Under the pieces are notes generated by a model. That model was given only the letters and a program-made list of their open reading frames with translations. It did not search any database and was not told where the DNA came from. Positions 41,083-41,228 of a stretch of 64,000 bases of DNA are shown here, piece by piece; the stretch's first letter is position 1, and every line of letters starts with the position of its first letter. The stretch spans positions 19,716,001 through 19,780,000 of the forward strand of contig OY740797.1 of assembly GCA_963514005.1 (NCBI GenBank), written 5' to 3'. The position numbers and the translations under genes were made by a program. The DNA is from Raja brachyura. Lineage: Eukaryota.

Positions 41083-41228
41083 AGGGGTGGAAGATTGCAA
41101 CCTTCACATGGTCCGCCCTGTTTCAACCAATGCAATCAATCTGGTGTGCACAATCAAATAAGATCAAATATAATTTGTTGTCCTACAACTTTAGGCTGTG
41201 CATGCCATACGCAAGAAGAAGAAGAAGG
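41083..41228 (+). mobile_element. Full-length 146-bp short retroposon with a 5' HDV-like ribozyme and (GAA)n tail
   Basis: Perfect 9-bp TSD TCAAGTGGT at 41074-41082 / 41229-41237; 3' end gccatacgcaagaagaagaagaag; two related copies elsewhere in the window. Confidence 0.85.
41084..41137 (+). ncRNA. Compact HDV/CPEB3-like self-cleaving ribozyme (predicted)
   Basis: P1 GGGGUGG/CCGCCCU (G1-U wobble), P2 GAUUGCA/UGCAAUC, P3 ACC/GGU, L3 UUCACAU (UUCACGU in the 28591 copy), J1/4 GU, minimal P4, J4/2 C-N-A-A. Confidence 0.8.

Follow-up and report, generated by a model that had tools for sequence, protein, structure and literature searches.

Self-cleaving ribozymes of the HDV type share a nested double pseudoknot and have been found at the 5' end of several non-LTR retroelements. 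In autonomous LINEs such as R2, RTE, Baggins and L1Tc, which encode a reverse transcriptase, they process the 5' end of a promoter-less element from a host transcript (PMC6765202, PMC3774820). In short non-autonomous elements, namely NARTc, RIME and SIDER of trypanosomatids and the R2 SIDEs of Drosophila, the first 70-180 nt are an HDV-like ribozyme that cuts the element out of a co-transcript, and mobilisation is ensured by a LINE (PMC3383444, PMC4035085, PMC3414825). About 50 nt is the known minimum for the fold (PMC4870747), and P4-less versions of about 50-60 nt, in which a short linker replaces P4, were shown to self-cleave in vitro (drz-Mtgn and theta ribozymes; bioRxiv 10.1101/2023.06.13.544163; Riccitelli 2014 as cited in PMC4870747 and PMC6326823). 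The mammalian CPEB3 ribozyme, located in a conserved intron, is another HDV-like ribozyme, with a P1 of 7 bp, a 7-nt L3, a P1.1 made of one G-C pair plus U opposite U, a 4-nt J4/2 and a P4 stem capped by a UGGU tetraloop (PMC4836649, PMC9901934). A different ribozyme class, the hammerhead, is found in the SINE-like Sm-alpha elements of Schistosoma and in retrozymes, which are also short, abundant and non-autonomous, but it acts there on multimeric or circular RNAs (PMC6765202, PMC7761336).

Here, we analysed a 64,000-nt stretch of the genome of the vertebrate Raja brachyura (contig OY740797.1, positions 19,716,001 to 19,780,000 of the forward strand; hereafter the window), which contains a 146-base retroposon headed by a predicted 54-nt HDV-like fold. 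Compared with NARTc, RIME, SIDER and R2 SIDEs, which are visibly internal-deletion derivatives of a known LINE (L1Tc/ingi, R2) and have hundreds to thousands of copies, no parent LINE is known here, the predicted ribozyme is smaller, the host is a vertebrate and the copy number is of the order of 1e5. Compared with the P4-less drz-Mtgn and theta ribozymes, which come from gut phages and metagenomes and sit next to tRNA genes, this fold lies at the 5' end of a retroposon in a vertebrate genome. Silkmoth R2 also lacks P4, but has a J1/2 of 216-498 nt (PMC3774820), where J1/2 is 2 nt in the present element. Compared with Sm-alpha and retrozymes, it would have a single HDV-type head and linear target-primed insertion. 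As regards CPEB3, on the basis of published descriptions only, the same numbering fits (P1 starting with a G run and closed by G1.U; U20, C22, A23 and C24 in L3; one G-C pair plus U opposite U in P1.1; C-N-A-A in J4/2) and the 28591 copy even has G25 and CGAA, while the present element has no P4 stem, carries A instead of G at position 25 in the family majority, and heads a dispersed retroposon.

Results

Anatomy of the element and of its predicted fold

A sequence-only reading had proposed that this locus belongs to a short retroposon family headed by a compact HDV/CPEB3-like ribozyme, and this observation was confirmed, since every structural element that it listed is indeed found at 41084-41137 on the + strand, in HDV order and spacing (Table 1). 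P1, P2 and P3 are all fully paired, G1 is paired to a pyrimidine at the predicted cleavage site, as in the G1-Y rule of the class (PMC6326823), a C in L3 can pair with the G that follows P1', and a C opens J4/2. Two further copies were found, both on the + strand, and pattern searches as well as sensitive blastn and nhmmer searches found no other copy in the 64 kb, which contain no N. One point had been omitted in the sequence-only reading: the 28591 copy lacks the six bases CCGCCC, which are the P1' strand, and hence cannot form P1. No such deletion is common in the family, so that this is a private defect of that copy.

Table 1. Features of the element, of its relatives in the window and of neighbouring sequences. 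RNA positions are counted from G at 41084; helices and junctions refer to the predicted fold.
Coordinates (strand)	Feature	RNA positions	Details
41074..41082 (+)	Left target-site duplication, TCAAGTGGT		Perfect; identical to 41229-41237
41083..41083 (+)	One extra A between the duplication and G1		Probably added without template at the 5' junction; the family boundary is at 41084, not 41083
41084..41090 (+)	P1 5' strand, GGGGUGG	1-7	G1 is the predicted first base of the cleaved RNA; pairs with 41113-41119 as 5 G-C plus 2 G.U including G1.U36, -11.3 kcal/mol as a duplex
41091..41092 (+)	J1/2, AA	8-9
41093..41099 (+)	P2 5' strand, GAUUGCA	10-16	Perfect 7-bp complement of 41131-41137, -7.4 kcal/mol
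41100..41112 (+)	P3 (ACC/GGU, 3 bp) closing L3 UUCACAU (41103-41109)	17-19, 20-26, 27-29	U20 = 41103, C22 = 41105; position 25 = 41108, A instead of the canonical G
41113..41119 (+)	P1' strand, CCGCCCU	30-36	Deleted in the 28591 copy (CCGCCC)
41120..41126 (+)	GU (3' side of P1.1), then 5-nt linker UUCAA replacing P4	37-38, 39-43	G37 (41120) can pair with C22, U38 lies opposite U21; 41125 is G in about 87% of family depth, giving UUCGA
41127..41130 (+)	J4/2, CCAA	44-47	C44 (41127) is the candidate catalytic cytosine
41131..41137 (+)	P2' strand, UGCAAUC	48-54	End of the 54-nt fold
41138..41174 (+)	Variable body		The 28591 copy lacks about 25 nt here
41175..41212 (+)	Conserved 3' module: hairpin followed by UAGGCUGUGCAUGCCAUACGC		Candidate recognition site for a LINE reverse transcriptase; only 5 bp of the hairpin remain in this copy, because 41175-41176 are mutated
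41213..41228 (+)	(AAG)5 tail		Variable length in the family
41229..41237 (+)	Right target-site duplication, TCAAGTGGT
28591..28696 (+)	Second copy		L3 UUCACGU (G25), J4/2 CGAA; P1' and about 25 nt of body lost
28581..28591 and 28697..28707	Duplication of the second copy, GAATCAGTCAG / GATTCAGTCAG		11 bp with one mismatch; its last G coincides with G1
9094..9158 (+)	Third copy		5'-truncated, tail module only
9085..9093 and 9159..9167	Duplication of the third copy, CGAGGGTCG		Perfect, 9 bp
59774-63628 (-) and 49948-53419 (+)	Two L1/Tx1-type LINE copies with long open frames		The first has 511-aa endonuclease-side and 760-aa RT-side ORFs
21057-24570 (-)	CR1/L2-type RT fragment (21224-22607) with (TCTGAA)n tail (21057-21084), abutting an L1-type fragment (22579-24570)		Perfect 34-bp tandem duplication at 22567-22637, at the junction
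44473-44568	Perfect (ATCCATCT)12 microsatellite		Inside a GC-rich, purine-skewed block (36-48 kb; GC skew up to 0.36)
21193-21213, 32250-32270, 45205-45225	Three perfect runs of exactly 21 G, with unrelated flanks		The identical length suggests an assembly or polishing artefact, or a shared element end
35912	Run of 17 G
45686	C-rich run of 33

In order to evaluate whether such a match could arise by chance, we wrote a loose HDV-like descriptor, requiring a P1 of 7 bp starting with G, a J1/2 of 0-4 nt, a P2 of at least 5 bp, a P3 of 3 bp, an L3 of 6-8 nt with C at its third position, a G directly after P1', and C-N-R-A before P2'. It hit the 128 kb of both strands of the window once, at 41084, while it hit twice in 150 dinucleotide-preserving shuffles (0.013 per window), and not at all when the catalytic C was replaced by A, G or U. 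By contrast, ordinary nested folding was unremarkable, the minimum free energy of the head and of the whole element being no better than that of shuffles (z = 0.02 and 0.26), as expected because pseudoknots are not modelled, although P1 was still predicted. Rfam covariance models, including HDV and CPEB3, gave no ribozyme, tRNA or other family for the whole window at gathering threshold, nor for 361-nt and 68-nt stretches at E<=10, the only hits being two chance matches in the tail; these ribozyme models carry a P4 stem and no pseudoknots, so that a miss is weak evidence. No tRNA-like head was detected by ARAGORN, and no 5S, 7SL or snRNA similarity was found.

Abundance, boundaries and variation of the family

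Logan contigs from four public runs, three of DNA from three organisms and a fourth guessed to be RNA from another organism, were placed on 40800-41500 at 80% likeness. This gave 10,582, 10,824, 11,531 and 650 contigs, with essentially all of the depth falling within 41084-41228. Summed word depth over the head was about 1e6, against 3-11 on the flanks, a ratio of about 1e5; this figure is not a copy number, but this ratio and the three copies in 64 kb both point to the order of 1e5 copies. The best-supported place where contigs leave the element into unrelated sequence was 41084, with 385, 383, 314 and 40 contigs and an upstream agreement of about 0.34, which is random. The pile-up of full-length 5' ends at G1, which had been set beforehand as a condition for the ribozyme interpretation, was thus observed. 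The only other listed 5' boundary, 41177, is an alignment break caused by four adjacent private mutations in this copy, while 3' boundaries were spread over 41222-41227, as expected for a tail of variable length. Contigs of two other organisms (runs X3 and X10; records 9, 16, 25 and 32) bridged both flanks into this very insertion, with 1-8% flank divergence, and the insertion therefore predates the split of those organisms. In the run guessed to be RNA (X17), family copies lay inside contigs of 0.5-1.7 kb, and one 1040-nt contig began 1 nt before G1 and ran about 900 nt past the tail, but contigs cannot show RNA ends, and this is only a lead.

Within the 54-nt head, only two places were listed with a variant at 5% or more: 41125, and 41128, which is U in about 58%, G in about 33% and C in about 9% of depth. 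These are the linker that replaces P4 and the N of C-N-A-A, both of which the model leaves free. The family thus has CUAA, CGAA and CCAA, with C44, A46 and A47 unchanged, and the stricter C-R-R-A form of J4/2 is present only in the CGAA fraction, about 33%. Further minor variants, which change-type tallies indicate to be C>A, G>A, T>G and C>T changes, have no assigned position; the three copies in the window suggest that at least two of them lie in the tail CpG at 41211-41212, but this is not certain. With this reservation, no variant at 5% or more was listed in the helices, and the head was nearly invariant across the family and the four organisms sampled, so that conservation but no covariation was seen, only two heads being available as sequence. 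Depth over the head and the tail was 3-4 times that over the body, and many contigs skipped 32-91 nt of body, which indicates two conserved modules joined by a dispensable spacer. The tail module forms a predicted 7-bp hairpin, AAGUUGU-CCU/A-ACAACUU, in the family majority (majority letters at 41171-41176) and in the 9094 copy, followed by a conserved box (UAGGCUGUGCAUGCC) and the tail repeat.

Position 25 of L3 is A in this copy and in more than 95% of family depth, since all the A>G places counted in each of the four runs are accounted for at other coordinates. Decay of a CpG was considered as the cause of A25 and rejected, because independent decay of CG would give comparable CA and TG, whereas no C>T at 41107 and no G at 41108 reached 5%. 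A25 was therefore present in the source copies. The only head of the window with G25, that of the 28591 copy, is also the one that has lost P1', and no copy in the window has the strict canonical motif.

Search for relatives and for a partner LINE

Exact-pattern scans of metagenome contigs, for head and tail, and of viral contigs gave no match. A scan of genome contigs gave a single 20-mer identical to the P2-P3-L3 stretch, in a Lentimicrobiaceae MAG (contig L001, 3821-3840, - strand), with no P1, P1' or P2' around it, which is a chance match. No partner LINE was found: within the window, the tail motif occurred only in the three copies and was absent from the LINE fragments, and microsatellite tails in the window are of TCTGAA or octamer types, not GAA. 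The ESM Atlas placed the 760-aa RT-side ORF of one of these LINEs with chordate RVT_1/zf-RVT proteins.

Discussion

The interpretation offered by the sequence-only reading was partly supported. A short non-autonomous retroposon family with target-site duplications, a variable (GAA)n tail and no detected tRNA or other known RNA head is supported, as is the fit of its head to the HDV/CPEB3 double-pseudoknot layout. It is a SINE in terms of size, tail, duplications and copy number, but no head derived from tRNA, 7SL, 5S or snRNA and carrying an internal pol III promoter was detected. By contrast, its L3 had been likened to that of CPEB3 (UUCACGU), and this does not hold for the family, because of A25, the canonical G at this position being one of the few near-invariant bases of the class (PMC6326823, PMC3386971, PMC3774820). 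The 54-nt fold had been considered unusually small, but it is small without being unprecedented, in view of the P4-less versions already described. Mobilisation by an Ingi/Vingi- or RTE-type enzyme had also been proposed, and no evidence was found for or against such a partner. The resemblance to the CPEB3 core is real, but identical active sites have arisen independently in a termite R2 element and a fungus (PMC3774820), and common descent with CPEB3 is not shown.

We favour, with a probability of about 0.55, a promoter-less retroposon that cuts itself out of host transcripts. In this view, the element is one copy of a very abundant, roughly 140-nt family with two functional modules, the first 54 nt with the HDV-like fold and the last roughly 55 nt with a hairpin, a conserved box and an (AAG)n tail of the kind that LINE reverse transcriptases recognise. 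Copies lying in the sense orientation inside host transcripts would be co-transcribed, the head would cleave just 5' of G1, so that the RNA begins exactly at the first base of the element, and a LINE enzyme would bind the tail and copy the RNA into a new site by target-primed reverse transcription, producing 8-11-bp duplications. The retroposon anatomy, the family size, the fit to the fold and the coincidence of the family's 5' end with the predicted cleavage site were established by this analysis, while cleavage itself, co-transcription and the involvement of a LINE partner are inferred. The fit of three helices, P1.1 and the junction is far beyond chance, and ribozyme-headed elements, autonomous or not, provide a precedent. 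However, in canonical HDV-like ribozymes, U20.G25 forms the reverse wobble that positions the catalytic Mg2+ and is treated as fixed in HDV-like descriptors (PMC6326823). All 508 natural HDV sequences have it, and the equivalent U23/A28 mutant of the antigenomic ribozyme is 528-fold slower, although it still reaches an end point of 75% (PMC3386971, Table 1). The same change gave no detectable cleavage in the Nasonia R2 ribozyme, and the sow-bug R2 fold that lacks this G is inactive (PMC3774820), while G25 ranks second in importance for CPEB3 activity (bioRxiv 10.1101/2022.05.31.494017). Cleavage, if it occurs, may thus be slow or may depend on a different metal-binding arrangement. Moreover, folds that look adequate can be inactive in vitro, as with the SIDER1-beta ribozymes (PMC4035085), and a 5' pile-up at one base is also what a fixed transcription start would give.

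The best surviving alternative, although less likely, is a fossil ribozyme. The head would descend from a genuine HDV-like ribozyme, for example the 5' UTR of a LINE, and the lineage that made most copies would carry the crippling G25-to-A change and no longer depend on self-cleavage, its 5' end being set by something else, such as a transcription start or a host nuclease acting on the same compact fold. The predominance of A25 and the large published losses of activity are in line with this, as is the more diverged 28591 copy, whose duplication carries a mismatch and which has the canonical UUCACGU and CGAA, as would fit a canonical ancestor. By contrast, all three helices, C22-G37, C44 and A46-A47 remain intact in the majority sequence, the 5' end still sits exactly at the predicted scissile bond, no promoter-like head was detected, and the activity remaining with the U/A combination in HDV means that slow cleavage is not excluded. 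If the head proves inactive, the finding reduces to an abundant SINE with a fossil ribozyme head, which still matters for repeat annotation.

An ordinary pol III SINE, with a head of unknown origin, G1 as transcription start and a coincidental HDV-like pairing scheme, appears improbable. Such a pile-up is expected for any SINE, G25 is missing, Rfam ribozyme models are silent, and the majority sequence GUUUCGAC around 41120-41127 loosely resembles a B box, with 2 mismatches in 7 specified positions by our own reading. However, the chance match expected 0.013 times per window would also have to start at base 1 of the element, the two pseudoknot helices are perfect 7-bp pairings, and neither an A box nor a tRNA-like fold was found. 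A local repeat or an assembly artefact is refuted by three copies with their own perfect or near-perfect duplications, by the abundance of contigs in independent runs of several organisms, and by the bridging of this insertion to both flanks in two other organisms.

In the literature searched, no paper linked HDV-like ribozymes to sharks, cartilaginous fish or vertebrate SINEs. What looks new is the combination of a vertebrate host, a family of the order of 1e5 copies, a minimal P4-less head on a SINE-sized element with no visible parent LINE, and A25 in the amplified lineage, whereas ribozyme-headed non-autonomous elements and P4-less folds were already described. A bolder reading, which we consider doubtful but which remains compatible with the evidence, is that the family spreads because its 54-nt head frees it from any host transcript it lands in. 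It would then be among the largest HDV-like ribozyme families in any genome searched here, and a natural ribozyme that works with A instead of the supposedly essential G25, and its CPEB3-type active site would make retroposons of this kind a concrete candidate source for the mammalian CPEB3 ribozyme.

The family poses a sharp question about the G25.U20 wobble, since the amplified lineage has A25, and it offers about 1e5 natural variants for sequence-function work. It would extend minimal P4-less HDV-like ribozymes from phages to vertebrates. SINEs are normally defined by a pol III promoter head, and a highly successful vertebrate family that uses a self-cleaving head instead would show a second route to SINE success, in which every copy inside a transcribed region can be a source.
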